A stretch of 64,000 bases of DNA from Vitrella brassicaformis CCMP3155 (GCA_001179505.1 CDMY01000364.1:35868-99867), one strand, 5' to 3'; positions 1 to 28,829 are shown, counted from the first letter of the stretch. The notes: generated from the letters alone by a model not told the origin. A program made the numbers and translations.

Positions 1-1572
1 TTCGTGGCTGCTGTCATCATTGGGCGACGTCGTAGCTGCTGCTGGTGGCGGAGGTGGCGGCTGGGTGCTGCTGTCTTGCTGCTGGAGAGCTTGAGGGCCT
101 TGCTCCATGCTGACAGTCGACCTGACAACAAAGGAGGGGCGCCAGGAAGGACAAAGATGAAAGCCATGACCCACAGCGACGCTCACACGCGTGTGTGACT
201 TTGTGTGTGTGTGTGTGTGTGTGTATGTGAGGCACCCGTTGACAATGCAAACGAGCTGCAGCTGTTCGTATCCCTCAATTCTCTTATTATCTGACAGTAT
301 GATTTGCCTGACCTCCCCCTCGCGCATCGACAGCAATCCCTCACGGAGCCACCCATTCCCAAAATCAGACAGACGATACTCCAGCCCATAGACCTTGTAG
401 AAATCGTCGTTCGTGTCAAAGCCGTTACTCCACGAAATCCAGTCGTATTTGACGGTGTCGTTGAGTGTTGGCACACTGCCGGTGCCCTGCCGCACGACCT
501 TGGAGAATGCACCAGATGGTTGGCGTACAAAGCCGTCGGAAATGGCGTTGCCGTTACGTGGTGCTGGGTGAGGCAGCTGCCTTTGAGGTGACCTGACGAG
601 CGAGTCAGGCAGAGTACACGGGCAAAGTGACATCCATGTGGCACACGCGCTCGTGCGTGTGTATGTGTGTGTGTATACCCATCGATAATCTTGATCAACC
701 GCAGCTGCGCAAAGCCGTCCTCTACCCCCCTTAGCCCAAGTATTTGCCTCATCTCCCCCTCACGCATCGACAGCAACAGGTCAGCAACGGGCGAGTCCGC
801 CTCCCGGAGATAAGTCTCCCAGCAACGGATATCGACCCAGGTGTCATTGCCGTCGAAGGCATCCCGCCAAACAGTCAAGTGCCACTCGACAGCCTGGCTG
901 AGTGTTGGCGCATGGCCGGTGCCCTCTTGCACCACCTTGTAACGAAGACCAAGAGATGGATGTTCCACGAAGCCATCGTCGGCCGTGTTCTCCCCTTTGC
1001 CGGCCGCCGCCCCTTCATCTGCCGCTGGTCTCGCTGCTGAGGTTGGTGCGGGTGCTGGTGGCTGATCGCCTTCCTTATTCTCTTGACCTTTGTCGGTGCC
1101 CATAGCCGACCTGAACACCAGCACCAAGTCGGGGATAAAGCACACCTGCCTTGTGTGTCTGTGTGTGTAGGTCACTCACGTGTCGGGTTCGATGCAGAAC
1201 TTGATGTGCGAGTGGAATGACGGCTTGATGGCCAACCGCTGACCATTGACGTCAAACTCATAACCGCCTTTGCCATCACCATGGACCAACTGACCATCCA
1301 ACAGCCCAACAGGTTCTCCACTCATGGCGGCAACACACCGCCCTACACACACACACACACACACACACACACTCAGAGTGACGTTCACTTCAGCGAGAGA
1401 TCTGTATGTGTGTCGGTGTTGGCTGACGTCCTCTGAGTCGGCTGTTCCGGTGGAAGACATCCAGCCGTGATATGAGCTGCATCTGCGGCTGCAGTGGTGC
1501 GAGTGGTGGTCGCACAAACCCACAGATAGTCGCCCAGGGCACCAACAGGACGCCAAACAGCCACACGACCAT
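1..1572 (-). CDS. Multi-exon protein with signal/transit-like leader and at least 2 (probably 3 or more) atypical FKBP-like domains; runs off the left edge (gene A)
   Basis: Leader MVVWLFGVLLVPWATICGFVRPP (ATG 1572). Exon MSGEPVGLLDGQLVHG...IEPD. Domain 1 (~680-990): LRYKVVQEGTGHAPT...WRDAFDG...LLSMREGEMRQI...AQLRLIKI. Domain 2 (~240-550, read by hand): GAFSKVVRQGTGSVPTLNDTVKYDWISWSNGFD...WLREGLLSMREGEVRQI...EQLQLVCI. The exon at 1-130 ends PPPPPAAATTSPNDDSSHE, the same linker that precedes the FKBP unit at 13099-13575. The exon 1 donor is uncertain. Confidence 0.75.
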
Positions 1573-1727
1573 CTCACGACAGTCACGACACACGCCCGAT
1601 TTGTCGCTTGTTCTCTGCTGTTGATGAATCAAATGCCTCCAGATCGCAGGTGGGAGCTCTTATGGCTGTTCTCCTAGCGCAAACGTCGCTTCTTCAAAGG
1701 AAAGCGGCCGATCGGCCTGTGGCTCGC
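967..1727. repeat. Segmental duplication, copy 1 (5' half plus upstream region of gene A); copy 2 at 15141-15908
   Basis: Near-identical sequence by eye, e.g. ttgatgaatcaaatgcctccagatcgcaggtgggagctcttatggctgttctcctagcg at 1621 and 15802, with shared exons and introns. Confidence 0.9.
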
Positions 1728-1799
1728 AGCTTCCATGACAAACCGTCGCCATGTGAGCCAAAAGCGACAACGAGCATCTCCCAGGTCAGCTGACATCAC

Positions 1800-2390
1800 G
1801 TGCAAAATCTGACTGAGATCTGTCAACACGTTCATGTCTGTGTGTCCCCTCTTCGCGTGTCCTTGATGCAGGTCTGCTGTAGGATGTCGTCGTCTGTTGA
1901 GCAGCCGGCCGGGCCGACGGGCGGTCGGTCTGTTTTTTGCATGCCAGTGCATAAGGATCTCTCTGTATGTTTGTCGGTGAGTGTGGGTGTGGCCAATGGC
2001 AATGGCGCCACAGTGCTGCGGCGTCAGGAGGTCTCATCGCCAACCACAGCAAGTGGCCAGGGCGGTGGCGCTGATGTGTTCTTTCGGTTGCCGTCGGGTG
2101 TGTTCTATCAAGTGGTGCGGCAGGGCAGTGGGCCCAAACCCACACGTGATCAGACCGTCAAGTACGACCTCATCGAGTGGCGTGACGACTTCGATGGACA
2201 GCGCAAGAAATATGATCTCGGTGGGCTGGAGGGTCGTGTGTCTTGGCAACAGGAGTGGCTCCAGGAGGTCTTCACTGACATGCGTGTGGGTGAGGTGCGG
2301 CGGGTCCTCGTGCCGTTCAACAGACTGAGCTCTCGTGGAACTCTCAGTTTGGTGAGATATATCCAGTACAGTCTGGTGGCCATCCTGTGA
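1800..2390 (+). CDS. Single-exon atypical FKBP-like domain protein (start uncertain)
   Basis: PSGVFYQVVRQGSGPKPTRDQTVKYDLIEWRDDFDG...EWLQEVFTDMRVGEVRRVLVP...RYIQYSLVAIL*. This is an FKBP-type beta-strand/helix pattern with the 80s loop nearly absent. Confidence 0.75.
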   Translation: MQNLTEICQHVHVCVSPLRVSLMQVCCRMSSSVEQPAGPTGGRSVFCMPVHKDLSVCLSVSVGVANGNGATVLRRQEVSSPTTASGQGGGADVFFRLPSGVFYQVVRQGSGPKPTRDQTVKYDLIEWRDDFDGQRKKYDLGGLEGRVSWQQEWLQEVFTDMRVGEVRRVLVPFNRLSSRGTLSLVRYIQYSLVAIL

Positions 2391-3148
2391 TCGCCGTCTC
2401 CTGGTGTGTCTGCTATGTGTGCGTCTGTGGCGGTGAGGCGCCATCCAGCTGACGTTTTTTGTTTCTATAGCTGCTGTGTTGGTGTGGGGAATTTCGGTCG
2501 TTCTTTCTGGACTTTCCCCTCTGTCGATGATCGCTCTTTATGGGAGTGTATGCCTCGTGTGTGTCTGCACGACGGGCGCATTCCACGACCGACGATGTGA
2601 CGACTTTTTTTTTCCTGTCGCCCGTGCATGTGCAGTTCTGTGTTGGCGCTGTATGACACATGTGTTCTCACAGAGATGCTCTGACTCCTTCCTGTGACTC
2701 CATCCTTATATGTCAAATCAACTTGTCGGTGTGCTGTTTTTGATGGTTGAAGTGTGGCACCCAGATGAAAGCAACACTTCTGACATCGGCGTGGCCTGAG
2801 ATGACGTGTATGCAGGCGGCCAGTGGGAGTGACGGACCCGACACACATAGGCATGGATTGACAAGAATGGACGCATGTCGTTTCCGGCCGTCAGTCATAC
2901 ACACTCAGTGATAGACAGCCACCACGCTTTGTCCATCCATCCATCAATCAACAGCTAGATCCGATCGGCTGTGTGTCCCTCATCCCACCGCAGCCACCAA
3001 CACTCCAACCAACAGCCGAGGAGCTGGCTGTCGATATCTACGACTACCTAAAGACACACACACACACGCAGAAGCCGACCAGGTCAGTACGCACATGTGC
3101 CCTTTCTGTCTGCCACGCCAATTCCACTCCTTACCTGTTGTGTGTCTA

Positions 3149-6105: not shown

Positions 6106-7580
6106 ATGACAGCCACGGTGACAATGGTTTTTGAGGGCCTTTCCTCTCTGGCCTGCCTCATCTCTGTCGCCTCTGCCGCCTTCGGCGACCTCAGCTATGG
6201 CGTCCCAGCCTCACGGGGGCGATTCAGTCTCTCATTCAGCCACCACACCACCACTGAGGTCCCCGACAGCGATGAGAGGGAGAGCACCTACGTCAGCACC
6301 GCATTTTCGCTCTCTCCGGGTGACGTCCTCAACACCGATCCCTTCGACGTCCCCGTCGAGATGCCTTACAATGAACCGATGGCGATAAGAGGCCTGTGGG
6401 GGGAGATTGTGGACGACAGGAATGTCAGCGTGCCACTCGACGAGGTATGCTCATCAATGAAGGCGGTCTCCATGGATTTGTGTGTGTGTGAGTTAAAAGG
6501 TGTACGTGCATCATTGGTTTCTGTTCTACACGACGCCTGACGCCGGCAACGAGCTGGTGGGGAAGCTGGGCACAGGCGCAGAGACCAGAGGTCACTGACT
6601 GACTGACTGACGGACGGACGGATGGATGGATGGACGTGAAGGCACATTCGTGTGTGCTCCCATGTCTGGCTGCAGGCACTCCGATAGTATCTCTCACCGC
6701 TCCCTATGCCTTCACGACGACAGGCAAGGAGAAGTGGTGGCTCAACGTGCACCTGCTGATGCTGCAAAACGTCACCAACGTGTCGGCGTGCATTCAGGTA
6801 AGACACACATGGCATCAATGGGACCCCTGCAGGCCTTTGCGTGCGACATGTCGGGATATATGTGTGTGTATCTTTCAGTGCCTGTGCCCTCCCGATGGCC
6901 GACATGGGTCTTTCAACTGCTGCCCAGATGGGGTGAGTCTCCTGTGCTCACGGGTGTGTGCACTCTCACCACTTGGCCTCTCTGTGTGCATCCCACAGGC
7001 CCACTGGCACACGACATTCGACCCCTTCGTGACCTCCGACGGCACAGATGCCTTCGATGACCCCCACCAGTGCGCCAACTGCAACAGCGACCCAGATGAC
7101 GTCTTCGGTCCGCCCATCCAGAGCGGTTTTCTTGCCCGCCCCGCCCCCAAGTACTACCGAGTCAAGTACACGGTGCGGTATGCCCATGTCAGCCCCATTG
7201 TGCGGCCGGTCCGCGCCAACATGATCATCGATGCCGTCGGCGGACGGCATGAGTGGAATGTCTTCCCTGCAGAGGGATGCCTGAAGCCATCAGCCAGCCA
7301 TCTTGCGGTTGCCATCAAGGAACGGCGGCTGGGCGACAGTGGCCATGATGATATTGCCGAGAGGTGTGTCGACACCAAGACGGCCACTGTGGTGGTGGAT
7401 GAGGACTTCCAGCTCATCGGCATGCGCGCCCATATGCACATCGGGGCCATCGACGCGGTCCTTGCCGGCATCAGCAGCAACAGCAGCGACACAGATGACG
7501 GTAGTGGGATCGATTGGCGCTGCGACATGCGGGCCATCTACGGCCGCACGCCCCACACGGCTGGCGACCTCAGGGGCGAC
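6106..7580 (+). CDS. Secreted SURNod19 (stress up-regulated Nod19)-like protein, truncated at its 3' end
   Basis: Signal peptide. The spliced motifs VPLDE|VYVHHW, GTGAETRG|T, WWLNVHLL, ACIQ|CLC, GMRAHMHIGAID and CDMRAIYG match the recalled SURNod19 pattern. Homology stops at YGRTPHTAGD and runs into CT-rich intron-like DNA with no stop or donor. Confidence 0.7.
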
Positions 7581-7680
7581 CTTCCTCTCTCCCTCCCTCC
7601 CTCCCTCACACCCCCAGTCACCGTTTCTCTCTCTCTATCTCTCTCTCTCTGTGTGTGTGTGTGTGTCATGACTACTTCAG

Positions 7681-7860
7681 GTCAGAGACGGCGAGCAGAG
7701 GATGCAGAAGCATCCTGAGGAGGACGCCGAGGAGATCAAGGCTAAGCACAAGGAGATCGAAGAGATCTGCAACCCCATCATCTCGGCCGTCTACGGCGCC
7801 GCGGGCGGCGCGGGCGGCCCCACCGGCGAGGAGGACTACAAGGCACACGACGAACTCTAG
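7681..7860 (+). pseudogene. BiP: Orphan terminal exon of ER HSP70 (BiP) ending in HDEL
   Basis: After the acceptor cttcag: VRDGEQRMQKHPEEDAEEIKAKHKEIEEICNPIISAVYGAAGGAGGPTGEEDYKAHDEL*. No other HSP70 exons were seen upstream. Confidence 0.85.
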
Positions 7861-9892: not shown

Positions 9893-10081
9893 CCACAAAG
9901 ATGGAAAAGCGGTCTAGGCGGATGCAGGTCTTTCTCTCCTTTGACGTAAAAGCGCGCAGCCCTTCATCCCTCTATGAAGTGCCAAGCTGTGCAGCCCTTG
10001 CACACTAGAGAGGAAAGCGATGAGTCATTACATTACGCCTCAGATCAGGGTTCCCACTCGCTTCCGTTTTTGCCCTCCTGC

Positions 10082-10112
10082 AGGGTTTGAAACCCTTAAC
10101 CCGTAACCCTAG
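10082..10112. repeat. Short cluster of degenerate telomere-like units (telo-box-like)
   Basis: agggttt-g-aaaccct-taaccc-gtaaccctag, lying between divergent gene starts at 9892 and 10399. Confidence 0.45.
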
Positions 10113-10398
10113 CACCCCGTCGCCCACTGGGTCGTGGTGAGCGACAAGCGCAGAAAGAATCACGAATGACGTGCATGCGTCAGAACATCCACCTCTGAGC
10201 TTGCCGGTCTTCAGCTCGTTGGGGAAAAAACAGGTCCCTCAAAACCCTGCCTGCGAAGAACAGGAATATGACTTCGGCCTCGTGAGGGCATCAGGTGTGC
10301 AACGACAATGGGACCAGACTCAAACCTACTCATGGTGCCTGCTCGGTTGTGTGTGGTTGTCAGGCATCGCTGACAGATCTGCTGCGCCGCAACAAACG

Positions 10399-11977
10399 AT
10401 GGAGGCCGAGTTGTCCGCTCGCCAGTTCAGCGCCCAGGCGATTCTCAATCAGCTGCACGTGCCCGTGACGGCCATCGGCGACGCCATAAGCCAACTGCAT
10501 GCCCAGATCCGCCAAGCAGACGACGCCGCCCAGCGAGAGAGGCAGACGCACGGCGCCTCGGACCCATCAGCAGCGTCGCCCGATGACGTGCTGCTGCTCA
10601 ATGTGGGCGGCAGCGAGTGGCGAGTGAAGCGGCAGCACATGACTCAAGGAGAAGGCGTGGAGGGGACTCTGTTGGCGGCGCTGTTCTCGGGCTGCTGGGA
10701 CAACCGATTCATCAAGGACGACAAACAGCGGGCGTTCATCGACATCTACCCGGAGGCCTTCAAGACCATCCACACGGCCATATTGGATACCGCCACCCTC
10801 CTCCAGGCGGGCAAGGCGGCGTCGATTGTCACGCTGCTCGACGAGGCATCCCAGCGGAACTACACCGGTAAGGGGCATGAAGGCGACAGCGCACTCATCC
10901 TGTCCTCTCACTCTGTCTCTGGCTGGCCGTGGTGTAGGTCGTCATGGCTTCTGGATCAAGTTGCTGCTGTCGCCACTGGACAAGGCGGTCTCAGCGGCCC
11001 CTCCCAGTGGCGTCACTGAGCCGCGCCTGTCCGCCACGGACAGCCCTGCCGTGATGGGCGACGCCGTCAAGACGCTCGAGGCCATCATGAAGACATTCAC
11101 CAAGGAGAAGGCCCGGCTGGAGGGCCAGCTGCGGGCGGCACAAGAGCGACGTGACAACCTCGACAAAGAGATACAGGTGACCCACACAGACAGAGCCAGG
11201 GGATGTGGATCGGTGCTGTGTGTGGTTCACAGGCGGTGAGTCCCTTTCTGCTGCCTCTGAGTGGCGGTGACCCCATCCGGTCAGTCGACGTGTGCGGCCA
11301 GGTCATATCGACCACTCAGTCGACTGTCGATGAGATGAGCGACGAGCTGCGGAATCGATTCGACCTGTGAGCATCGACCCATGCACCGAAGCACACAGTG
11401 ACAGCGATGCCCTATCGAGGATGGCTGTGTGTGTCTTTAGGTGGCCGCGGCCGGTTGAGGTGGTGCAGCCCGACCACATCAGCCGTATGGTCGATCACTA
11501 CCGCCGCAGACGTCTCGGCGCGTCGGCCGCCGACATGGCTCCGGTGCTGAGGATGGACAAGACTACCAAGCAGAATGCCTTCGATGTCAACGCAGCCGTG
11601 TACGGCGTCATCAGGAAACGCAGATGGAGAGCCGCGCAGGAAGGCTGACCTCGCCGTCTCTCTGTCTATGTTTTTCCCTTTGCAGTGCTGACTTCACTGT
11701 GATGCCATCTGGTGCTCGGTATCGCATCGTCACGGAGGGCACCGGCAGAGTGCCCACACTCAACGACACCGTCAAGTTCTACGAGATCTGGTGGCGTGAT
11801 CGATTCGACGGCCGGGACAAACGCTACGACCTCCGTGGGGCGGTGTATCGTGTGTCTGATCTGTATGGGTGGGAGCGCGAGGCGTTGCTGTCGATGCGGG
11901 AGGGCGAGGTGAGGCAAATCATCCCGCCACCCGGGTTTGTCCGCTACGTTGAGCTGCGTTTGGTCAGCATAGAGTAG
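10399..11977 (+). CDS. KCTD-type BTB + coiled coil + degenerate second BTB + FKBP-like domain (copy 1; last splice donor mutated)
   Basis: LLLNVGGSEWRVKRQHMTQGEGVEGTLLAALFSGCWD...FIDIYPEAF. Exons 10399-10867, 10938-11176, ~11232-11366, ~11441-11611, ~11687-11977. The donor before the FKBP exon reads ag|gaaacgc, versus ag|gtacgc in copy 2 and ag|gtctgc in copy 3. Confidence 0.8.
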
Positions 11978-12429
11978 GAGAGAGTCCACACACACGCATG
12001 TGGGGGCGGCTGTGTGTCACACACTCATGTGTGTGGCCGGGGGCTCTTCCCTTATTGCCTGGCTGACTGTGTGCCTCGGGTGTCTGTCTGTCATTGGCCA
12101 CTCACAGCACTTGTGGGTGTCACGTCTGCTGCTCGGCCGTGGGTTTATTCCTGTCTGCCGTGCTGCAAAGAGAAGAGCCCTTTTCTCTCCTCTCTCCCCC
12201 TCTCTCTCTCTCTCTCTCTCTGCGTGTGTGTGTGTGTGTGTGGCTGCTTTTATTCAACTCGAATGCATGGCTGTCTGATCCGATGCAGTCTTGCTGAAGG
12301 GCGTGGGCGGGTTCTTTGTGTGCGTGGTGTATATGAGTGGGTGTGCGTGGGGTGAGGGAAGGGACACTTCACGTCGAGGTCAGGTTCTTGGCGATTTAAT
12401 GAGTGCCACACACCACATTTTTCGGTGAG

Positions 12430-12504
12430 GGTGAGGTGCGGCGGGTCATCCTGCCTACAGTGGAAAGAAGATATGTCGAGTATAGGCTGGTGTCCATCCT
12501 GTGA
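12430..12504 (+). pseudogene. Isolated C-terminal fragment of an FKBP-like domain
   Basis: GEVRRVILPTVERRYVEYRLVSIL*. The upstream sequence is not FKBP-like and has stops. Confidence 0.7.
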
Positions 12505-13090
12505 GCTCTCTGCTCGTGGGTGTGGCGACAGTGCGTGTGTGGGAGGTGGTGAGTGCTGTCTGCCTTCATTCATTCATTCAGGCCACCTATGCGTTTATGT
12601 ATTGTGGCCATCGATGTGACATGTCGTTCTCGTGTGTGTCTATGTATTGTGTTTCACACTGACGTGATGACTCGGTGGGTCTAATGTTTGTGCTTATCAT
12701 AACGGACAAATTGGCTCGTTGTCACATACGTCACAATCAACCCATCGCCGTCCGACCCGCCACCCAGCCACACTCCACGCTGAAGAACTGTCTGACACCC
12801 CTACACACACCGGTCCATCCATCGCCTACATCTGCACACAAGCATCAGATATACGCGCACAATTGCGAAAGTGACAGTAGCCAGTCAGTCGACGGCACGC
12901 AGAGGTCAGTAAAGATAAGACAGCTAACCGGAAGGCCAGAACAACCTACAGACGCTCCTGCATCCATCCTTGCATTCACCCATCAGCGTCACTCCCTTTG
13001 CCCGCCCTCGGGCTCCTCTGCTGCCCGATAAATCGACGAGTCAGTCAGGCACATTCACTGAGATCGATGCCTTCCATCTCACACTCAATC

Positions 13091-14836
13091 TCACTCTCTC
13101 AGAACCGCCAGCAGCCTGCACTCCGGAACCGGGCCTTCCTTCTATCGTAGCTCAATCTGGCCGGGACAATGACCCGCCGCACCTCACCCACACGCATGTC
13201 AGTGAGGGTCTCCTGCCACCACTCAGCACAGTCAGACCCACGCCACTCCACCCCACGCTCCTCGACTATCTTCTCTTGTCCGTAGAAGTCGTCACGCCAG
13301 TCGATGTAGTCGACCTTGACCCACTGGTCACGTGTCGGTTTGGGTCCATTGCCCGCCGGCGGCCGCACCACTTGGTGATAGGCGCCAGAGGGGTACAGAG
13401 TGGATCCTTCGTGGCTGCTGTCGTTATTGGGCGCCATCGTAGCTGGTGGTGGTGGTGGTGGTGGGCCGAAGCCCACAGGAATCCTGGCAAAGACAATACC
13501 AAAGAGCACCGCCCACACATAAAGTGAATGCTGTGAGGCACATCGACGTCCGCAAGTGTCAATGCCCCGACTCATATGATGTCCAATAGCCGCATCTCGA
13601 TGTAGGCATCCTTGCCAGTGGTGCTAAAGGATGCCGGCAGGATGACCCGCCGCACCTCGCCAACACGCATGTCAGTCCACATCTCCTGGAGCCACTCACG
13701 TACATCAGACAGACCGAACTCCAGCCCACTGCCCTCCCCTCTCTTGTCCTGGCCGTCAAAGTCGTCAGACCACTCGATAATGTCGGCCTTTATCCGCTGA
13801 TCACGGGTCGGTGTGGGACCGCTGCCCTCCTGCACCACCCAAGACAACACGCCCGTCGACCGCCTCCTGCTGCCATCGCTGGCCGCCGCTTCTTCTCTTG
13901 CTAGTGCTGGCGGTGCTGCTGCTGCTGCTGCTGACGGTGGTGGTGGTGGTGGTGGCCGCTCGGAACCGACAGAACTCCTGACAAGAAAATACCAAAGAGC
14001 AATGCGCACATATGAATGAGCCCCGTGGCGCACACCAATCCTCACACGTGTGTGAATGTGCCCGACTCACCGGATGTCCACCAGCCTGTACTCGAGATAT
14101 CTCTCCTTAAAGTTTCCGTTGCCTGGCACGAATACGCGCCGCACCTCACCCACACGCATGTCAGTGAGGACCTCCTGCTCCCACTCAGCCCAGTAAGACA
14201 CACGACCCACCACCCCACCGAGATCATATTCCTTGTCTTGTCCGTCGAAGTTATCACGCCACTCGATGATGTCGACCGTGACATTCTGTTCATACGTCGG
14301 TTCAGGCCCACTGCCCTCCTTGACCACTTGATAGTAGGCGCCAGACGGCATCCGTGTGAAGCCGGCGGGAGTGCTGGTAAAGACAACACCAAAGAGCACC
14401 GCCCACACATAAAGTGGATGCCGTGAGGCACGTGTGAATGTACCCCGACTCACAGGATGTCCAAAAGCCGCAACTCGTTGTAAGCATCCTTGTCAGTGGT
14501 GCTAAATGGCGTCGGGACGATGACCCGCCGCACCTCACCAACACGCATGTCAGTGAGCACCTCGTGTTGCCACAGACCTCGAGCACACGGACGATCCACC
14601 TCCCCCCGCCTCACGCACACGTTGTCTCCGTCGAAGTCGTCAGCCCACTGGATCCAGTCGAACTTGACGCGTTGGTCACCTGTCGGTTTTGGCCCACTGC
14701 CCGGCTGCACCACTTCAATCAGATAGTACGCGCCAGACGGCATCTGTCTGAAGCTCACAGGAGTCCTGGCAAAGAAAACACCAAAGAGGAGAGGATGAGC
14801 AACACCCACATGCACACCATGTGAGTGCCGTGCCAC
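13091..14836 (-). repeat. Tandem array of four intron+exon units (~390-475 bp)
   Basis: A related intron sequence recurs before each FKBP-like exon: donor gtgagtcggg, then cactttatgtgtgggcggtgctctttggt...ccag before the acceptor (least similar in the first unit). Confidence 0.85.
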
Positions 14837-15756
14837 TTGTGCGTGTCTCTCACTCCTCGTCCATAATGCCGATCAACCGCAGCTGACGGTACCAGCCTCT
14901 ATAGCCGTCTGGCACTTTGATTTGCCTGATCTCCCCCTCCCTCATTGACAGCACCGCCTCACGCCACCAATCACGCTCATCAGACACACGAGCGACCACC
15001 CCACGGTGATCGTAGTAAATGAACTGGCCGTCGAATCCATCACGCCACTCGATGACGTCGTACTTGACGCGGTCGTTGGCCGTGGGCGCTCTGCCGCTGC
15101 CCTGTCGCACCACCTTGTGAAGTGCGCCAGACGGGCGCTGAACGAAGCCATCGTCGGCCGTGTTGTCGTCTTTGCCGGCCGCCGCCCCTTCATCTGCCGC
15201 TGGTCTCGCTGCTGGGGTTGGTGCGGGTGCTGGTGGCTGATCGCCTTCCTTATTCTCTTGGCCTTGGTCGATGTCGACAGCCGATCTGACCACCAGCACC
15301 AAGTCGGGGATAAAGCACACCTGTCTGTGTCTGCTTGTTCAGGTCGCTCACTTGTCGTGTTCGATGCAGAACTTGATGTGCGAGTAGAATGACGGCTTGA
15401 TGGCCAACCGCTGGCCATTGACCTCGAACTCATAGCCGCCTTTGACATTCCCATAGACAAAGTGACCATCCAACAGCCCAACAGGTTCTCCACTCATGAC
15501 GGCAACACACCGCCCTGCACAGACACACAGACACAGACACACACAGACACAAACAGTCAGAGTGACGTTCACTTCAGCGTGAGATCTGCATGTGTGTCGG
15601 TGTTGGCTGACGTCCTCTGAGTTCGCTGATGCGTTGGAATAGATTCAGCCGTGATGTGAGCTGGATTTGCGACCTCAGTGGTGTGAGTGGTGGTCGCACA
15701 AACCCATCGACAGCCGCCCAGGGCACCATGAGGACGGCAAACAGCCACACGACCAT
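13091..15756 (-). CDS. Paralog of gene A (gene B): leader + small N-terminal domain + five tandem FKBP-like domains, the last one decayed
   Basis: Leader MVVWLFAVLMVPWAAVDGFVRPP (ATG 15756). Domains lie in ORFs 14850-15320, 14450-14836, 14067-14453, 13572-14045 and 13099-13575. The first four are joined by phase-2 GT-AG introns; the donor before the fifth is AT. Confidence 0.8.
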
Positions 15757-17138: not shown

Positions 17139-18082
17139 TCATCCCCGGCTGTTCAATGTGCGTGTGTGTTCCATGTGGATGAGTCGGATCTCGACGTACC
17201 GCTTGGTCTTGCCCAGCCGATGCACACTCGGAGGCACTATCATCCTGCACACAGCAGCACACACACAATACATACATCAACACGCACCACCAACCTTAGC
17301 CACCCACCGACCTGCGTATCTCTCCGACCCGCATGCTGAGGACGGCCTCCCGCTCCCAGGGGAAATACAGGTCACTCACCACCACAGACCAGCCCTACAC
17401 ATAATTGGTTGATAGCCACACACACACACAGACGCACACACCCATAAGTGATGCCATACTCAATCCTCGCCCATCTGTGTGTGTGCGGACATGCCTTCTT
17501 GTGGACCATCTTGTTGCCCTCGAAGTAGTCGTACCTGCACACACAGACAGAGACCACACACGTACGTCTACCCAACATGGGCACACACACGCACGAGCTG
17601 ACCAGACGGTGTAGTCGATCTTGACGGTTTGGTTGAGGTAGAGAGGGAAGGTCCCCTTGCCCATTTGCACTATCTGGAAGCGCACACCCAACACAGATGT
17701 CTGCGGCTGAGCGATGAAGGCCAAATCGTTCTGGTGAGCCGAGGGCAGCTCGTCGGGGATCGACGCCGATAGGCTTGTGGGTGTGCTGGCGCTGCTGCTG
17801 CTGCTGGCGCTGGGCACACCCACATTGCTGAATCAGACAGACAGACAGACAGACAGACAGATCCTCACAACACATGGATGGCTGCATGCGGTGTGTTTGT
17901 GGGCACTTCTTGTGCACTGTGTTGTTGGCGATCTCAATGCCGTCGGGGCACATTATCTGCTTGACATGCTCCTGCCGAATGTGCCGCCGCTGCCCGGCGG
18001 CCACGTAGTAGAAACCGCCGTGTGCGTCAACGAAGGCCTCACGGCCGAAGAACAGACCCACAAACGCCTCTTTGTCTTCCAT
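17139..18082 (-). CDS. Intron-containing FKBP-like domain protein (start uncertain)
   Basis: Exons 17603-17827, 17495-17534, 17312-17394 and 17139-17244 join in phase: GVRFQIVQMGKGTFPLYLNQTVKIDYTVW|YDYFEGNKMVHKK|GWSVVVSDLYFPWEREAVLSMRVGEIRR|MIVPPSVHRLGKTKRYVEIRLIHM. One intron uses a GC donor (aag|gcatgt). Confidence 0.8.
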
Positions 18083-18784: not shown

Positions 18785-21700
18785 ATGATCACTTCACCCA
18801 ATGAGCCTGTCTTCCGACACGTACACATGCTGTGTGCAGGCTGCTGCTGCTGCTGCTGCTCTTGTCACTATCGACGTGTCAGGTGACTGCACACGTGATG
18901 GGTGACCGACTGCATGAATGTAAGATTTCTTGTTTGCAGGCACGGACGAGTGGCCTTCAGGCGTGGAGCGCGTTCAGGGGACCGTCATCGACACGGAGCG
19001 GACCTGGCCGCAGCTCAAAAAGGCCATTGCCAACAAGGGAGCAGTCGGCGAAGCACCACCTGGCCTTCTCGAGGACAAATACTACGATGGGAAAGACTAC
19101 TTGTGTCTGAGCCTCCCAGTCAAACAGGTGGGCACCACCAATGGCCACATGGGGCAGTGGCTTGATGTTATCTGTGTATGTCACTTCAAGAGCGTGAGGA
19201 GGTGGTGAAGAACACCACCGTGATTGTAGCTGAGGAGCTAGCGCGCAAGGTGACTGAGGAGAAGATGAAGATCATCATCTACGACATGCTCTCGCGCGAG
19301 GACACCGAGCTGACCGAGACTCAGGAGATCATGGACAGCTCCCACCCTCTCTACAGAAGCGCCTCAGAGCGGGAAAGAGACGGATACGCCTACATGGCTC
19401 TGGCGAAGGACGTCATACCAAGACACACAGCCATCGGTAGGCGACTGACGTCGAGCAAACAATCTGCTTCTCACCTTCCCGTTCTGTGTGGTTGTCTCAG
19501 GCCTGTACGGTGGGCGCCTGGTGGCGACGACGGACAGGCGGTGCAAGCCGGAGAACTACAACCGATTCTACATTTATGGCGTGGATGCCTACCAGACAAA
19601 GAAGGGCAATAACATCTTTCATCTTGATGGCTTCAGATTTAGAAGCGCCGCCGGTCAGTCAGCAGGCAGGCAGGCAGGCAGTAAAGATGGGTAACCTTGT
19701 GACTTGATATGTGTGTGCCTGTGTGGTGTCTCCTCTGTCCAGGGATGATGACCCGCGTGGCATGACGGGCAAGAGCGCCAATGTGGTGGCTCAGCCTTTT
19801 GAGTTGTTCGGCGTCCCTTTCATCTGCCATATTTCACTCAGGGCCATCAACAAGGACGAGGTACTCACACACGACGCCCGCACATGCTTCAAAGGACTGA
19901 CGGTTGATTGGCTCAGGAGGTGCTGGTGGACTATGGGAGGGATTACTTCACAAGTGACGATTGGAGGGCTCAGGAGAAGAAACAGGTGCCTACTTCCAAT
20001 CAATGGCAGCACACATGTGTATATTCTATGTTATCTGCGTCATTCAGTCGCAGCAAGCCATGGAGGAGCTGCGTCGGTTGAGGGACCGACAGCCGTTGCT
20101 ATCTGACGTCAAAGAAGAGGCAGATGGTACGCAGGCGTCGCATTGATACTTAAGACATTGCCAGGCAGATGTGTGTGAATGTGTGTGCAGCGTTGAAAGA
20201 AGGGATGGCCAAGAAAGACGAAGAGATTGCCGCTCTAAAGCAGGAGGTGGAGCAGTTGGCGCAGGTGCAATGTCCCGCCAAGAGGTCACGTGGCGTCGGC
20301 ACCGAAAGTACAGAGGCCCTCCGTCTATAGTCCACCCACGTGTGTGTGCTGATGTCTTGTATTTACGCACGTAGATGTGCTACCCGACGGTGACGCCACC
20401 AGCTCCAAGAAACGACGTCAAGACCAGCACAATGGACCAGCAGCACCAGCAGCAGCAGCAGCCAGCAAGGGCGACAACATTTATGAGGAGTTCAGCGCCC
20501 AGGCGATTTTCAATGAGCTGCACATGCCTGTGACGGCCATCAGTGACGCCATCACCCAGCTGCACGCCCGGATCCGCCAAGCTGACGACGATGCTCAGCG
20601 AGAGAGGCAGAAGCACGGCGCATCGGACCCATCAGCAGCGTCGCCCGATGACATTCTGCTGCTCAATGTGGGCGGCAGCGAGTGGCGAGTGAAGCGGAAC
20701 CACATGACTCAAGGGGAGGGCGTGGAGGGCACTCTGCTGGCGGCGCTGTTCTCGGGCTGCTGGGACGGCCGGCTGGTCAGTCACGACAAACAGCGTGTGT
20801 TCCTCGACATCTGCCCGGAGGCCTTCAAGACCATCCATACGGCCATCCTCAACGCCGCCACCCTCCGCCAGACGGGTAACGCCGCGTCAGTTGCCACGCT
20901 GCTCGACGAGGCATCGAAGCAGAATAGCTACACCGGTAAGGGCCATGAAGGCGACTACACACTCATCCCCTCTTATCACACTTTTCGTTTGTCTGGCCGT
21001 GGTGTAGGTTCCCATGGCTTCTGGATCAAGCTGCTGCTGTCGCCACTGGACAAGGCGGCCTCAGCGGCCCCTCCCGGAGGCGTCGCTGAGCCGCGCCTGT
21101 CCGCCACGGACAGCCCTGCCGCGATGGGCGACGCCGTCAGGACGCTCGAAGCTATCATGAAGGCCATCGTCAAGGAGAAGGCCCGGCTGGAGGGCCAGCT
21201 GCTGGCGGCACAAGGACGACGTGACAAACTCGACAAAGAGATACAGGTGACGAGATGCGCCCAGAGGGAAAGGAGGCGCCTTGATGTGGATCGGTGGCTT
21301 GTGCACCTGGCAGGCCGTCATGCCCTTCCTGGCGCCTCTGAGTGGCGGCGATGCCATTCGGTCTGTCGACGTGTGCGGGAGTCTCATCTCGACGGTGCAG
21401 TCCACCTTGGACGAAATGGGCGACATTGGGGCTTCACAACCGATTCGATATGTAAGTTAAGCCAACCACACACATCATTCAGATGTCCCTCAATACGGGG
21501 TTTCCGTCAGGTGGTCGCGCACACGTGCGGTTGAGGTGGTGCAGCCCGACCACATCTGCCGTATGGTCGATTACTATCGCCGCAAGCGGCTCGGTGCGTC
21601 GGCGGCCGACATGGCTGCGGTGCTCAAGATGGCCAATTCGACAGAGCAGGCGGCCTTCGACATCAACACGGCCATGTACGGCGTTGTCAAGCCCGACACA

Positions 21701-22102
21701 CACACCACACACGGCGCGCAGCAGACCAGGTACGCAGATGGAGAGCAGCGCAGGAAAGCTGCCCTCGCCGTCTATCTGTCATGTTTGTTCCTTTGCAGCG
21801 ACATTGATGGCTTCATTGAGATGCCATCTGGTGTGCGCTATCGCATCGTCACGGAGGGCACCGGCAGAGTGCCGACACTCAACGACCGCGTCAAGACCGA
21901 CACCATTGCGTGGAGTGACGGATTCGACGGCCGGAAGAAGGCATTCGATTACCGTGGGGAGGTGCGTCGTGTGTCTGATTTGGCTGAGTGGTGGCGTAAG
22001 GCGGTGCTGCCGATGAGGGAGGGGGAAGTGAGGCAAATCAAACTGCCACGCGGATATCCTTATCCCCGCTATGTTGAGCTGCGTTTGATCAGCATAGAGT
22101 AG
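18785..22102 (+). CDS. SET-like domain + coiled coil + BTB + degenerate BTB + FKBP-like domain (copy 2; +1 frameshift late in the gene)
   Basis: SET motifs DVIPRHTAIG|LYGGRLV, YIYGVD...FHLDG and HISLRAINKDE|EVLVDYGRDYF. Phase-0 junction 19985|20054, then junctions into the BTB exon (20375-20934). The exon 21314-21451 is 138 nt where phase 2 is needed (extra G in attggggctt). FKBP exon ~21799-22102. Confidence 0.7.
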
Positions 22103-22534: not shown

Positions 22535-23964
22535 CTATGTCTTCTCGGTTGTGGTGGGCGCGTTGAGCATCGGCTCCCCGTAATACTTCTGATACTCCTC
22601 CGCGTTCACTGACACCCAGGACACACAAGATACGTGTGAGTATTGGACCTGTGTGTGTGTGTGTGTGTGTGTGCTGGTACACAATAACCATGTGCAACCG
22701 TACTTTTGTTTTCGAGTGCGATGACGTCTTTGGCTTTGGCGACTTCGTCGGCCGGCAATGCATCCACCACATCGCCCAAACGATCCCTGACCACATACAC
22801 GCAGCATCACACAGCAGGCACACCAGCACATCCGTGTGTGTGTGACACATGCGCACGGTGTGCAGATGGATGGATGGATGGATGGATACCTGACGGTCTT
22901 GAGCGCTCTGGCGATGAAGTCTGGACGCCAAGACAAAGACGCACAGGTACAAGGCATTCGGTGCGCCAGGCAGCCACGCTTTGTTGCACTGACCTGTTTT
23001 GGTGCGGTCTATGTCGCCCACTTTCAGCGAATTCGCCCTCGGATCGAAATACTCGAGCAGCGTCGTCAAGGAATCGACCGCCTCGCCGCCGGCATTCCGC
23101 ACCTGACGTCGACGGACACGCGTACGTGCGCCAACGTGGTGTGTGGAGGTTTGTCGTGTGTGCACCTGTTGTTGTCTGTCTTGTGGGGCGTACAGCGCTA
23201 GGATCTGAATGTTCTCCTTCAGCCGATAGTTGTCCAACATGTAACTCACAGCCTGATCAGACACACAAACATTCATTCATTCATTCATGCACACCTCACT
23301 GTCCGGGTGTGTGTGTACCCGTACGTACCAGCTTGATGTTGGCTCTCTGTGCATCTCTGAATTTGCCGCTGCGAATCAGACGTTCCTCCTGATTCGTCGC
23401 TGCACACGCATCAAGCAGGCGCCCACACACAGACAGACGCACATGTGCATCTGCTTGTATGAGTCTGTTGGCAACGCACCTTCAATCACCCGCAGAATGC
23501 TCACAAGCGGCTTCTGAATGGGCGGCAGGCCAGTAGAGGAGTCCGCATAGGATGACGAGAGGGGCAAGAGCAGCCCAGCCATGATGCCCAGTGCCCACAT
23601 CCCTCCATCACCCAGGTTCTCTCTCCGTGTGTTTGTCACACTCATGTGCAAAGCAGATGGGCTCGGTTGCCTGTAGGCAGACACAGAGATAGATGCTTGT
23701 GTGTCTGTATGTGACGCAATTGTGGAGAGCTCACCTTGTCGATGGTCTTCGAAAGCTGGTCTGCGTCTGTGTCTGTGTGTGTCTGGAGAAGGGAGAAACC
23801 ACACAAACAGTCAATGTCTGTGTTCCCACATGCAACAGCATATGTGTGTGTGTACCGTTCTCTCCATCCATCTGTCCTCGACGGCAGCACAAAGCCGATC
23901 ACAGAGCAGCACAAGAGGTGAACAGTCAGCAGCAACAGGATGAAAGACGGCGGAAGATCTCTCA
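22535..23964 (-). CDS. Thylakoid-lumen-type helical protein, PsbQ-like (inferred)
   Basis: Signal peptide MRDLPPSFILLLLTVHLLCCSVIGF, a transit-like region, then a twin-Arg signal TRRE...WALGIMAGLLLPLSSSYA. Mature part ATNQEERLIRSGKFRDAQRANIKLAVSYMLDNYRL...SLTTLLEYFDP. The PsbQ-like label comes from recalled algal homologs. Confidence 0.65.
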
Positions 23965-24101
23965 TTCTTCTATGCCCGATGGTCATTTGCTTCACTGTGC
24001 AGACCCGAAAACAGCGAGAGGAAGGCAGAAAGGCGACTCGGAAGCGGCGCTGACGATCGCCGATACAGCTCGCAGTGATTGGAGAAAGCAAAAGCGAAAC
24101 G

Positions 24102-25772
24102 ATGGCAGCCATGCTCCTGTGTTTGCTTGTCGCGACCACATCTGTCGGTGTGCTTGGCTTCGTTCCGCCGTCTGTCACGCCAACCAGAGCAAAGCAAGGT
24201 GAGAGCACCGATAGATCCGCACGCAGACAGTCACTGCCACATAGCGCTTTCTTGTCTGCTGCTGCTTGTCAGGCATGTGGCCTTTGAGTGTCCCTCGGGC
24301 CTCTCGGCAGCCCGCCACATCTGCATCTCCATCGAGTGTCGTCGAAGACGCACTCGGCGTGGTGAATGGCGAAAGCAACATACGATACACGTGAGGCTCT
24401 CAACAGAGAGAGAGAGGGCAGCACACGTAGAAATCACCTTTCTTTTTGTGCGGTCAGTGACTACGTCGAGACTGCATCTTTCCCCCCTGAGAGCTCTGTG
24501 CTGTCCACTGCTGAGGTTTCTGAAGAGGTCGGCAGACCCCAAAAACACACACTGCTCCCTCTCAGAGATCCGAGTCATGTCATGTGATGTTGCTTGTGAT
24601 CGATGCAGTCAGCAGCACCCGCGGCACCGAAGAGGCGGCGGCCATTGTCCAAGGATCCGCAGCTGATTGTGGAGGGGGACTCGACACAAGTGACGCCATA
24701 CCAGCAGCTCGTCACCTACGGTACTCTGGCTCTCGCACTGGCCGCTATCGCACAAGTGAGAAAGAAAGAAGGACACACGCAGACGGCAGCTGTATTGTGT
24801 GTGGGCGATGGTGTGTTCAGGCATTGGTGTCTGATGCTTCCAATCCTGCGCTGATGTCGCTGATGGTGCCTTTCGCATTGCTGTTCGGTGACCTCTTCAG
24901 CGGAGTCTTCCACTGGTATGAGCGCGTCCACCTTTTATTCTTTTGCGGTGTTGGACATATTCCATTGATGTCGGTGTGTGTCTGTCTGTGTGCATCAGGG
25001 CTGTTGACAACTACGGCAACAAGAACACTCCCGTGTTCGGCAGTGTGATAGAGGGCTTTCAGGGACACCACAAGTACCCATGGACCATCACATACCGGTG
25101 AGCATGGACACAGAGGGGCGAGAGAAAGATACCATCTGCTTTGCGGGATGTGTGTGTGATGCAGTCCGTTTGCGAACAACGTGTACAAGATCTGTTATGG
25201 TGTACTGCTCATCATGGCCACCACATTCATCCTGCAGGCACCACCTGGTACCCTCACACACGCACACACGTGCCGTTTCATGGATGATCTTTTTGCTGCG
25301 TGCGTGTGTGTGTCCATATCGTCAGCTGTCCGTGTGTTCATGACGGTGTTTGGGTTGTCCCAAGTGATGGCTCAGGAGTTCCATAAGTACAGCCACATGA
25401 CCAAACCACCCATCATCGTCCAAAGGTGCGAACGTCCTCACCGGAATACACTCGTGGGCTCACACATCCATGTGTGTGTGTTGTCGATGATTGCAGGTTG
25501 CAGGGCATGGGGCTGATGCTGCCAAGGAAAGAGCACGGGCTCCACCACTCAGAGCCTTTCGAAGGTCAGCCATGAACATGACTACACACAAGCATGTCAG
25601 TACATGTATGTGGTGTCGTGTGGTGTGATGTGTGCAGGTCACTATTCAATTTTGTTTGGGTGGTTCAACCCGCTGCTCGACCACTCACAGGTCTTCAGGC
25701 TGATGGAGAGGGCCATCTACAAGTGGAACGGTCAGTTACCACACAGGCGCGTTCCCATCCATCGCACACACG

Positions 25773-25819
<47 letters not shown>

Positions 25820-25919
25820 TGTATCTTATCTACCAGGTCACATGCCGAATAGCTGGAAACTCGACGAGAGGCTGAGACAGGAGCAGGTTGACATGATCGA
25901 GGGCTCACAGAGGACATGA
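24102..25919 (+). CDS. FAD4/TMEM189(Kua)/CarF-family lipid desaturase with plastid-type leader
   Basis: Leader MAAMLLCLLVATTSVGVLGFVPP. His motifs DLFSGVFHWAVDNYG, FQGHHKYPW, QEFHKYSH and EHGLHH, plus HYSILFGWFNPLLD, spread over GT-AG exons. Confidence 0.9.
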
Positions 25920-27142
25920 CGTGCCGTCCCGTGTGATGTGTGTGTGTGTTGGTGGTCGGGGGGCGGGGCTGAGTGTACAGCGATTTTCCACCATCCCGTC
26001 TGTCAGTTGACGTGTACATAGAGACGTGGGATCAGGGAGGTTGGCATGAGTGTTCAGTGTTGAGTGTTGATACTTGGCTGGATGCATTGCCCTTGCAATC
26101 AGTCAGTCTGTGTGGGGAGCGATTGTAGTGGACCTCGACGCTCAAACGCAGTGGAGTGACGGCCCTTCTGCCTGTGATCAGCGGCAGGCAGAGAGAACGT
26201 CGCTTGAGCGCGTTTGAGCGCCGAGAGGACACCAGAAACACTACCCCTTGTCCGGATAACTCTCACTATCGTTTTGTCATCGAGAGAGACAGTTTTGTCA
26301 CCCGCTCTCACCATTTTGACTTCCGCATGCGCACAATCGTGTGAGTGTCGATAGAAAGAGCCGACCGACCAAGTGCGTGTATGGGTTCTCTTGGCACTAC
26401 GATCAGCTTGGTGGACGTCTTCTCTGCCTGTGATTGACAGCAGGCATGAAATCCGTCTGTCGAGGGGATCTGAGCACCGAGAGAGCACCAGACACGCACA
26501 TGCACACACCAGTGTATGTCTGAAGAGAGAGTTTTGTCTTGACACCGTTCTGCCTCGCTGTCGAATACAATGGCCTTGCCTCTCCGCTCGCCTGTCTTTC
26601 ATGCATTCACACCGGTCTTGCCTTCATTACTTGACAGGTTTCTCGGTGTCTGCGATATCGATGTGTGTTTTTCGGTGTGCTGCTGTGACTGCAGTGAGTG
26701 GACAGCCAGCCTGTTGGTTGACGGTGCTGATCACGTGAATCATGCTCAGTAAGAGTGGGTCAGAAGGGAAGGACGCGTTCATTGGCAGAGCACACATAGT
26801 TTTCGCGCACCGCACGTCCACACCATGAGACAGCACAACACACCGCTCACATGCTGAATCGACTACTACAGGGACACATACACACACACGCGAACGAGGA
26901 CAAGACAGCCACAGAGCCATAGATGCCACAGACGGACCACGCACACACAGGAGGCATAGTATGCGCCTACGTGTATGTGTCCTCACACCAAGACATAAAA
27001 AACACTTAGACTCTCTGGCACACAGGCCGCCATGGACAGCACACTCACTCCTTCACTCAGCACCGGGGCAGACACTCACCCAGGCACACATGAGTGTGAC
27101 GAACACAGCCGCCCCCACATGTGTGTCTGTGTGCACTCTCTC

Positions 27143-28829
27143 CTACTCTATGCTGATCAGCCGCAGCTGAACGTAGCGGCCATATCCGGCTGGTAAAATA
27201 ATTTGCCTGACCTCCCCCTCACTCATCGACAGCACCGCCTCACGCAGCCACCCATACAGACCAGACACACGACCCACCCGCCCACGGTCATCGTAGTATT
27301 TGTCCTGGCCGTCGAATGCATCACACCACGTTATCCAGTCGTACTTGACGCGGTCGTTGTTGTAATTTGTCGGCACTCTGCCGGTGCCGTCCGTGACGAT
27401 GCGATACCGATTACCTAACGGGGTCACAGTGAAGCCATCACCGCTGCAAAAAGGACAAACAAGACAGATGGATGGCGAGGTCATCTTTCCTGCGCTGCTC
27501 TCCATCTGCAGACCTGATGACGCCGTACATGGCCGCGTTGACATCAAAGGCCCTCTGCGCCTGCTCGTCGGTCAGCTGCAGCGGCACACTCGCTTCTTTA
27601 GGTGAGGCGCCGTGTCGTTGACGGCGGTGGTGGTCGATCATTCGGCTCATGTGGTCGGGCGGCACGTCGTTAACGGAGCCGCCCCACCTGAAATGGTTGG
27701 CACACAGGACACGATGAGCACCCGTGTCTGATTTTCTTGTTGTTGGTTTTGTAATGTGATCTCATCACTCACACGGATGCACTGTTGCGCCGCTTGAGTG
27801 CCATATCCTCCGGCATCGCGTCGATGGTCGACTGACACGTCGAGAGGACTTCTCCACACACATCGACAGAGCGAACGGGGTCATCGCCGTCGATGGGCGC
27901 GAGGAATGAACTCACAGCCTGGCAATACAAACGACGAGCGAATGAATCCTCGGACGGTTTCCCTTTGTGAGTGCGTGTCGCTCACCTCTATTTCGGTCAT
28001 GAGCTGCTCGTATCGCATTTTCTCTGTGTGCAGCTCCCCTTCGAGTTGTCGGTTCTGGTCAGCATGGGCCTCGAGGACGTTGTTCAGTGCCACGATGAGA
28101 CCCCTGGCTGCGTCGGGGATGCCCTCTGCAGTCACTGATGGCTCCTTGCCGGCCGGCTGAGCGGTGTCGTCACTTGCGGGTGTCTTGTGGACGGGCGAGA
28201 GCAGCTTCTTGATCCAGAAGTCATGCAAACCTACATAAACACACAGACAGCTGAAAAGGTGTACACGCGCCCCGTCGTATGTGTCTGTGATCTGTGTGAA
28301 TACCTTTGTTTCCACGCTTGTCAGCCTCGGTCAGTAGGCGGGAGACCGAAGGCACACTTGCCCCGCCCTTTCGAGCGGCCTGCTGGACGGTCCTTGCCTC
28401 CAGGATGGCCGTGTGGATGGTGTTGAAGGCCTCCGAGTCCATGTTGAGGAACACCCGCTGCTTGTCGTCCTTGATGAATCGGTTGTCGAACTTGCCGGAG
28501 AAGAGCGCCGCCAGCAGAGTGCCCTCCACGCCCTCCCCTTGTGTCATGTGGTTGCGCATCACCCGCCGCTCCGTGCCGCCCACATTCAGCTGCAGCATGT
28601 CATTTGCCGACGCCGCCGGTGGGTCAGCGATGCAGTGGCTCTCCTTGAGCTGAGCCGTGCTCTCCCTTTCGACCGTGATTTGTTGCTTCAGTGGGTTGAG
28701 GCTCTCACAGAGGATGACGGCCGGTCTGTGGAAGCTGTCGAGGACGACACGCTCCGGACATTGGGCGGTCAGGCTGTCGCTGTCCACCACCGCCGGAATG
28801 GACCAGTCTGCGGCGATAGATCTGTCCAT
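27143..28829 (-). CDS. BTB + coiled coil + degenerate BTB + FKBP-like domain (copy 3; appears intact)
   Basis: MLQLNVGGTERRVMRNHMTQGEGVEGTLLAALFSGKFDNRF. Same exon layout as copies 1 and 2; the last two junctions are canonical and phase-compatible. Ends RYVQLRLISIE*. Confidence 0.85.

Follow-up and report, generated by a model that had tools for sequence, protein, structure and literature searches.

What does a dense group of small FKBP-like modules do in the genome of the alga Vitrella brassicaformis CCMP3155? The question is raised by a stretch of 64,000 nucleotides on contig CDMY01000364.1 (35868-99867, assembly GCA_001179505.1), which was analysed at full length and is referred to here as the window. 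We consider it probable, at roughly 0.6, that the modules belong to an FKBP-fold family of about 95 residues per domain that lacks the flap, occurs in Vitrella only within the databases searched, and serves as a set of interchangeable, mostly C-terminal modules, each with its own groove chemistry and its own partner. This assignment is carried by a lineage-specific expansion in which dN/dS (the ratio of nonsynonymous to synonymous substitution rates) exceeds 1 with a focus on the presumed binding site, the mark of an adaptive recognition repertoire. The proposal of the first-pass annotation, that the domains may form a diversified repertoire of recognition modules, finds computational support in the pocket-enriched variation and in dN/dS above 1.

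With a search profile built from four copies, 11 uninterrupted FKBP-like modules were detected in the window, each at E 1e-17 to 1e-48. One further copy split by three introns and a C-terminal fragment of 25 residues complete the set, which spans positions 244-27436 overall and agrees with the earlier count of twelve near-complete domains and one fragment.

An AlphaFold2 model computed from the 11-row alignment reached a predicted local distance difference test score (pLDDT) of 94.6, with the secondary structure E-E-E-H-E-E. Foldseek aligned this model to Legionella and Burkholderia Mip and to FKBP12 structures with a template modelling (TM) score of 0.80. In VIA-align, LpMIP gave Z 14.2 and a root-mean-square deviation (rmsd) of 2.2 Å over 92/95 residues and FKBP12 structures gave Z 13, the range across the Mip and FKBP12 structures being 2.1-2.2 Å over 92/95 residues (Z 13-14). 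The 11-copy profile matched Mip-type FKBPs in the PDB at E 1e-6, and comparison with 116 canonical FKBP domains in hhalign gave a probability of 99.4%. Searched singly, the modules stay below the Pfam FKBP_C model (PF00254), the best reaching 20.9 bits against a gathering score of 21.1 and most giving no match. The predicted fold is nevertheless that of an FKBP, as had been claimed from the sequence at first pass. The 30s hairpin is 3 residues shorter than in FKBP12, and a stub of about 7 residues stands for the roughly 17 of the 80s flap, whose absence had likewise been noted.

HMMER and hhalign agree on an ungapped register in which Phe39-Pro80 of the family corresponds to Phe36-Ser77 of FKBP12. 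FKBP12 numbers were derived from the BpMip alignment, with an offset between the BpMip and FKBP12 numbering that we take to be +7. Columns 32, 39, 40, 45, 49 and 51 thereby correspond to Tyr26, Phe36, Asp37, Arg42, Phe46 and Phe48, and columns 58, 59, 61, 62 and 89 to Val55, Ile56, Gly58, Trp59 and Phe99. The FKBP12 cavity is formed by Tyr26, Phe36, Asp37, Phe46, Phe48, Val55, Ile56, Trp59, Tyr82, Ile90/91 and Phe99 (PMC5114585, PMC3949516). Among these, only the equivalents of Phe36 and Asp37 (columns 39 and 40) are conserved in the modules; Tyr82 and Ile90/91 are deleted with the flap. The loss of the VI(R)GW motif, reported at first pass, holds in so far as the Trp59 column (62) is hypervariable, but the Trp is not simply lost, as a near-invariant Trp in column 61 aligns to Gly58.

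Residues invariant in the 11-copy alignment are G8, V14, G17, G19, P22, T23, W35, F39, M69, G72, E73 and R75, and the framework motifs quoted earlier are thus real. Across 74 non-redundant modules, Shannon entropy is close to zero at G8, G17, G19, P22, W35, F39, M69, G72, E73, R75 and L93, and it is low at charged residues in alternate strand positions (K29, D31, D37, D47, R49, R54, E90 and R92). The fixed framework comprises the G-x-G...PT turn, W35, F39-D40-G41, W61, M69-R-x-G-E-x-R and Y88-x-E-x-R-L. Peak entropies of 3.2-3.8 bits are found at columns 32, 34, 45, 46, 48, 51, 53, 58, 59 and 62 and in loop 81-87. Hypervariable columns include those of Tyr26, Phe48, Val55, Ile56 and Trp59, which vary most in the whole domain; the 40s and 80s rims are hypervariable as well, and the Phe99 column is partly so. 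Instead of being evenly scattered, the variable sites occupy alternate residues of strands beta2 and beta3 and further lie in the 50s loop, at the start of the helix and within the stub of the 80s flap, confirming the earlier description of variation at alternating beta-2 residues, loops and the stub. The residues listed then for the Tyr26 column are also correct as a set; in coordinate order they read W, L, L, E, Y, I, I, W, V, Y, T and W, the first two having been swapped. Trp, Tyr, Phe and Leu account for 35% of residues at the variable strand and helix sites and for 16% elsewhere, a composition more in keeping with the lining of a semi-buried groove than with exposed loops.

Selection was assessed at the codon level with a self-written Goldman-Yang mixture likelihood (models M1a and M2a, F3x4, fixed iqtree topology, one branch-length scale factor). 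The main data were 25 modules from the window and two related loci. Likelihood-ratio tests (LRT) of M2a against M1a gave the following results:

25 modules, all sites: LRT 98.5 (p=4e-22), omega2 3.26 at 17% of sites
'TDMRVGEVRR' clade: LRT 35.7, omega2 2.86
'LSMREGEVRQ' clade: LRT 38.6, omega2 3.67
Nine modules of the third cluster: LRT 32.4, omega2 4.59
Gap-free, loop-free subset of 17 rows: LRT 67.6, omega2 3.52

In 11 data sets simulated under M1a as the null, the LRT did not exceed 5.5, and the framework class of sites has omega of at most 0.13. For the 25 modules, posteriors above 0.9 were obtained at sites 5, 27, 32, 45, 46, 48, 51, 53, 58, 59, 62, 82 and 83; pocket columns among these 13 selected sites make up 5 of the 11 columns homologous to FKBP12 cavity residues (p=0.006). 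M1a is rejected in each of the two clades, which have 12 candidate sites in common (overlap p=2e-6). The third cluster recovers sites 32, 36, 51, 53 and 59, and the gap-free subset sites 9, 27, 32, 45, 48, 51, 53, 59 and 62. We infer that the selected sites probably cluster in three dimensions. An alignment artefact in the 40s region was ruled out, as the signal stays in the 17 gap-free rows without loops.

A control that needs no tree took the sites selected in a given clade, scored them in independent sister pairs from a different one, and divided by the synonymous changes at those codons. The cross-validated, pooled dN/dS was 1.73 (Fisher p=2e-4); the flanking ±1 codons gave 0.35-0.70. As selected and constrained codons alternate within a few dozen bases, gene-conversion tracts cannot produce this contrast. 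Values above 1 at the variable sites were thus found in two clades, in the third cluster and in the tree-free, cross-validated test. Averaged over whole modules, pairwise dN/dS between close paralogues is 0.25-1.1, compared with 0.37-0.63 for the BTB part of the same genes.

The module paralogues themselves have a mosaic history. The array intron between modules 3 and 4 (13977-14069) differs from its paralogue on CDMY01000748.1 (locus L001) at 3/93 bases (K 0.033), whereas the adjoining module exon shows K 0.154 (14% of bases differ). Noncoding divergence along the array block is patchy (0.03-0.21), and together with exons that diverge faster than introns this suggests gene conversion. Depression of dS by codon bias, which would inflate omega, was also considered; the exons have diverged more than the intron, so that dS gives no obvious sign of being too low, albeit against this patchy noncoding background. 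Among five genes that join a BTB-like part to a module (A, B and E in the window, C in L001 and D in locus L002), heads and bodies have different histories. The BTB part of gene E is far from the others (dS ~0.77) and its module close (dS ~0.3), while gene D combines a near-identical BTB part with a module of the other subtype. Such discordance points to module swapping between genes.

The fate of the pocket differs between duplicates. In an array-module pair duplicated between contigs, 0/19 nonsynonymous sites of the pocket signature have changed (pS 0.18; neutral expectation 3.5), whereas BTB-linked pairs have changed at 12-14.5 of about 21 pocket sites against about 5 expected, i.e. roughly 2.5 times neutral. 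A groove that is re-tuned and then held behaves as a recognition surface rather than as a dying active site. The data are consistent with an FKBP shell that is rigid and lacks the flap, and with a concave groove in it that would have been re-tuned repeatedly and held thereafter. With the 80s flap gone, the concave face would be an open groove, and each module would bind its own partner (a peptide, a protein or a small ligand) instead of acting as a general prolyl isomerase.

The extent of the family was determined by an exhaustive HMMER scan of 1.84 billion representative proteins, which returned 856 matches. These split cleanly into 68 proteins with 86 modules, each module scoring at least 50 bits, and ordinary FKBPs at 45 bits or below. 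When 30 proteins were looked up, V. brassicaformis was the source of all 27 named relatives and the other three were MMETSP transcripts; some family clusters also hold short metagenome (JGI/IMG) contigs. In four marine-sediment metagenome runs (2025), 9-35% of sampled words of window 13000-15500 were present, so that Vitrella-like DNA occurs in such samples. Several members carry the automatic UniProt name 'peptidylprolyl isomerase', and a full-text search of the literature turned up no paper that describes an expansion of FKBPs in Vitrella. The family is present in public databases solely as unnamed or auto-named entries. Its genes lie in at least four genomic clusters, one in the window, one on CDMY01000748.1 and two at separate places on CDMY01001000.1. 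Two adjacent genes with matches to a T6SS_Tle1-like catalytic domain adjoin the module genes of the third cluster (locus L004 on CDMY01001000.1, 15517-17464).

The module stands at the protein end in 59 of the 68 family proteins. Partner domains include RING (P0020 and P0151), an HMG box and the SLBP RNA-binding domain, with CBM20 and SET known by UniProt name only. BTB_2 was matched above the Pfam cut-off of 21.4 bits in the paralogues P0064 (26.2 bits) and P0093 (25.5 bits). For the BTB part of the window genes, the Foldseek top 50 are nearly all BTB/T1 domains, though every one at E >0.1 and from a poor model. The RING and BTB-like partners suggest a role in ubiquitin ligases: where it is attached to a BTB/T1-like or RING protein, the module would be the receptor head by which the ligase chooses its substrate. 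Arrays with a signal-peptide-like start may string different heads together as a single multivalent protein destined for the plastid or the secretory route.

Within the window, the modules are carried by the following genes, with (+) and (-) denoting the strand:

1..1572 (-): 5' part of tandem-array gene P0003, 605-residue model running past the window's left edge, from tblastn
1423-1572 (-): exon 1 of P0003, a hydrophobic, signal-peptide-like start
687-974 (-): P0003 module 1, profile match
244-534 (-): P0003 module 2, profile match
1662..2390 (+): single-module gene P0010 = CEM05779.1, 213 residues, coordinates converted from L002 9183-9911
2079-2384 (+): module of P0010, aberrant, with a longer C-terminal stub
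10020..11977 (+): gene with BTB/T1-like domain, coiled coil and C-terminal module, 496-residue model, from gene call and profile match
10171-11019 (+): BTB-like open reading frame (ORF) of that gene, BTB_2 at 16.8 bits against the 21.4-bit threshold
11693-11971 (+): module of that gene, profile match
12424..12498 (+): orphan C-terminal module fragment of 25 residues, with 100% identity to the last 24 residues of MMETSP transcript P0008
13575..15756 (-): tandem-array gene P0002 = CEM05786.1, 586 residues, four modules, from tblastn and RNA joints
15607-15756 (-): exon 1 of P0002, signal-peptide-like, from tblastn of P0002
14862-15149, 14456-14752, 14073-14363 and 13578-13871 (-): P0002 modules in gene order, profile matches
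14765-14852 and 14374-14453 (-): phase-2 introns of P0002, both spliced in RNA
~13977-14069 (-): third phase-2 intron of P0002, predicted
13102..13437 (-): fifth module of the array block (module match 13111-13404), annotated apart as P0011, 112 residues, apparently decaying
17142..18082 (-): single-module gene P0062, 209 residues, module at 17181-17691 with three introns inside
17244-17310, 17394-17493 and 17533-17600 (-): introns of P0062, all three joints present in RNA run X7
18840..22102 (+): P0009 = CEM05790.1, 800 residues, BTB/T1-like domain, coiled coil and C-terminal module, UniProt name 'SET domain-containing'
21809-22096 (+): module of P0009, profile match
27146..28829 (-): gene with BTB/T1-like domain, coiled coil and C-terminal module, from profile match and gene evidence
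28221-28829 (-): BTB-like ORF of that gene
27149-27436 (-): module of that gene, profile match

In each of the three BTB/T1-like genes the module is the last exon. Behind each module of the five-copy block (13.1-15.3 kb) stands an in-frame TGA, which belongs to a GTGAGT donor. RNA contigs of run X7 join 14764 to 14853 and 14373 to 14454 on the minus strand, with GT..AG ends at both joints, which shows that modules 1-3 are spliced in phase 2 into one mRNA and agrees with the annotated 586-residue CEM05786.1. Only X7 behaves as RNA; runs X1-X3 continue through the introns, as DNA would, and were not counted as RNA support. An arrangement of the five copies as separate small genes or as alternative terminal 3' exons is ruled out by the stops inside GTGAGT donors and by the RNA-joined modules. 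The sole RNA contig over the start of module 5 (13178-13664, from X7) is unspliced across the stop codon of module 4 and thus does not splice module 5 to module 4. This fifth module has no last-strand motif and diverges from its paralogous copy equally at all codon positions (0.31-0.33), and for these two reasons it appears to be decaying. The starts of P0002 and P0003 consist of a hydrophobic stretch followed by an Arg/Ser/Leu-rich one, which fits a putative signal peptide with or without a plastid transit peptide. In view of the concern that most copies might not be expressed, it should be noted that the array gene and the intron-bearing P0062 are transcribed and spliced in X7, and that several relatives are present as MMETSP transcripts. 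The transcript P0008 (202 residues) is itself composite with respect to the window: its last 24 residues are 100% identical to 12430-12501 (+), and its remainder shows only 79% identity to the single-module gene at 1980-2387 (+). Divergence between strains, a rearrangement or a faulty assembly of the region might each account for this mismatch.

The surroundings of these genes have a G+C content of 55-62%, with spliced genes present and long bacterial-type ORFs absent. A tRNA scan and an Rfam scan of the window gave no matches. A SURNod19-like gene stands beside module arrays and BTB-module genes on both contigs (window 6630-7718 (+), L001 20697-22150, L002 3713-5449), which points to segmental duplication of the entire neighbourhood. 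Just past the last BTB-module gene lies a retroelement remnant at 29322-31459 (-), in which the ORF 30731-31459 matches the reverse transcriptase model RVT_1 (E 8e-27); an adjoining 392-residue ORF is without any Pfam match. Further along, an exon of an ABC-2 type transporter was found at 42105-42749 (+) (ABC2_membrane, E 2e-21), and assembly gaps of 300 N each occupy 43164-43463 and 59824-60123.

Several observations weigh against a repertoire of positively selected recognition heads. Codon-level data comprise 34 modules in total, from four loci only. The codon model assumes no recombination, and mosaic paralogues arising by gene conversion or module shuffling can inflate tests of site models. 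The posteriors are naive rather than Bayes-empirical-Bayes, branch lengths were scaled proportionally, and the code is our own. Of three cross-validated contrasts with same-codon dS, two are weak individually, one not significant (p=0.12) and one borderline (p=0.045). That the selected sites line the pocket is suggested by their placement through the HMMER/hhalign alignment and published FKBP12 residue lists, and sites 5, 9 and 27 fall outside the mapped pocket. On the partner side, the BTB-like ORFs of the window score 13.7-16.8 bits on BTB_2, below the 21.4 cut-off, the profile search of the BTB part against the PDB was not significant, and its AlphaFold model is poor (pLDDT 58.5). Finally, some copies appear decayed, namely 13102-13437, 12424-12498 and the tail of 2079-2384.

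Other readings of the modules were weighed as well. If the isomerase had been lost and the domain retained as a structural, linker or oligomerisation unit, the pocket would drift and dN/dS above 1 would be an artefact of gene conversion, of the synonymous rate or of a simple codon model. Such a dead-enzyme spacer accounts for the disappearance of the pocket residues needed for catalysis and FK506 binding, for a conservation that resides in the core and in charged residues of the convex face, and for the mosaic history; the fairly high omega of the BTB parts in the same genes (0.37-0.63) is in keeping with it too. We still regard it as rather unlikely. M1a, which includes a neutral class, was rejected in four data subsets, and the ratio of 1.73 was obtained on same-codon synonymous changes, with neighbours in the same tracts at 0.35-0.70. 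Nor does drift predict a pocket that is perfectly held in some duplicates and changes at about 2.5 times the neutral level in others, or variable sites that are rich in aromatic residues. A different possibility, that most copies are unexpressed, functionless duplicated exons or annotation noise, is favoured by the orphan fragment 12424-12498 and array module 5 (13102-13437), which shows equal divergence at all codon positions and is not spliced in. For the family as a whole it is largely refuted and has very little probability left, given that the open frame is kept in 11/12 near-complete copies, that the framework class has omega of at most 0.13, and that correct splicing is seen in RNA and relatives appear as MMETSP transcripts.

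Retained catalysis is a further option: the pocket variants could be tuned to classes of substrate in specialised isomerases or chaperones, with the arrays as multi-specific foldases of the plastid or secretory path. The kept equivalents of Phe36 and Asp37, the Mip-type peptidyl-prolyl isomerases (PPIases) and chaperones as closest structures, the signal-peptide-like start of the array genes and the automatic UniProt names all speak for it. It is improbable all the same, because the flap with Tyr82, His87 and Ile90 is deleted, conservation is wholly absent at the Trp59, Tyr26, Val55 and Ile56 positions, no module on its own reaches the Pfam FKBP_C threshold, and most copies sit on partners of cytosolic or nuclear type (BTB, RING, HMG) rather than in chaperone-type architectures. 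We retain the reading as interchangeable, flap-less recognition modules. A more specific version of it is possible, albeit tentative: the modules may constitute a germline-encoded, fast-diversifying recognition repertoire, linked with ubiquitin-ligase parts (BTB, RING) as well as with multivalent arrays that are secreted or sent to the plastid, for innate-immunity-like or conflict-driven targeting of viruses, parasites, toxins or selfish elements, a role in which this scaffold would be new.

Few known enzymes are as conserved as FKBPs, whose pocket is a long-established drug target; in the Vitrella modules this pattern is turned round, the shell being fixed and the pocket fast-evolving. If so, nature can employ the fold as a variable scaffold for binding, a matter of interest to protein evolution and binder engineering. 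The fusions with BTB and RING proteins point to a lineage-specific set of substrate receptors of ubiquitin ligases, in an organism that is related to the apicomplexan parasites yet lives freely. Such a set would be a counterpart to the expansions of MATH-BTB, F-box and TRIM families in plants and animals, and it hints at a little-explored field of genetic conflict in chromerid algae.

Comparison with known systems can be made on fold and on logic. Canonical FKBP and Mip-type PPIases (PF00254; FKBP12, Legionella and Burkholderia Mip) have the same fold as the Vitrella modules (Z 13-14, rmsd ~2.2 Å) and share with them the G-x-G motif, a V-x-V-x-Y-type strand 2, the F-D motif and the M-x-x-G-E-x-R strand 4. 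Unlike the canonical proteins, the modules have a deleted flap and a 30s hairpin shorter by 3 residues, fall below the Pfam threshold singly, and do not conserve Tyr26, Phe46, Phe48, Val55, Ile56, Trp59 and Phe99. Their conservation is inverted, the outer face being fixed and the pocket variable. The FKBP fold is used for protein contacts in FK2 of FKBP51/52, in the FKBP-like domain of AIP/XAP2, in FKBP38 and in thylakoid-lumen FKBPs of the AtFKBP13 type, and structures of FKBP52, FKBP38, AIP and AtFKBP13 are among the structure and profile matches of the module. To our knowledge, these non-catalytic domains are single, slowly evolving orthologues that keep the flap; we know of none that forms a large, species-restricted family with a positively selected pocket or that is carried on BTB or RING proteins.

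Expanded ubiquitin-ligase adaptor families of the MATH-BTB and F-box types are the topic of two papers (PMC4091423, PMC12951971). In the Vitrella proteins, as in those families, a constant part (BTB, RING), predicted here to dock to the ligase, is combined with a head for binding that is lineage-specific and duplicated in tandem. The head also evolves fast in both, which is a general trait of MATH-BTB and F-box families, and Thomas reportedly described in 2006 such adaptors with adaptively evolving substrate-binding domains in nematodes and grasses. The head in Vitrella differs in being an FKBP fold rather than MATH, FBA or LRR, its BTB-like partner seems to be of T1/KCTD type and is only weakly recognisable, and the head is also found on HMG, SLBP, CBM20 and SET partners and in secreted-type tandem arrays. 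Proteins of the TRIM5alpha type combine RING, a coiled coil and a variable SPRY, that is, a C-terminal recognition domain with positively selected surface patches. The combination of RING and a C-terminal recognition domain recurs in Vitrella, in a different fold and kingdom and with no support here for an antiviral role. In logic, the Vitrella family comes nearest to MATH-BTB, F-box and TRIM-SPRY; in fold, it comes nearest to Mip-type FKBPs and to FKBP-like domains of the non-catalytic kind.

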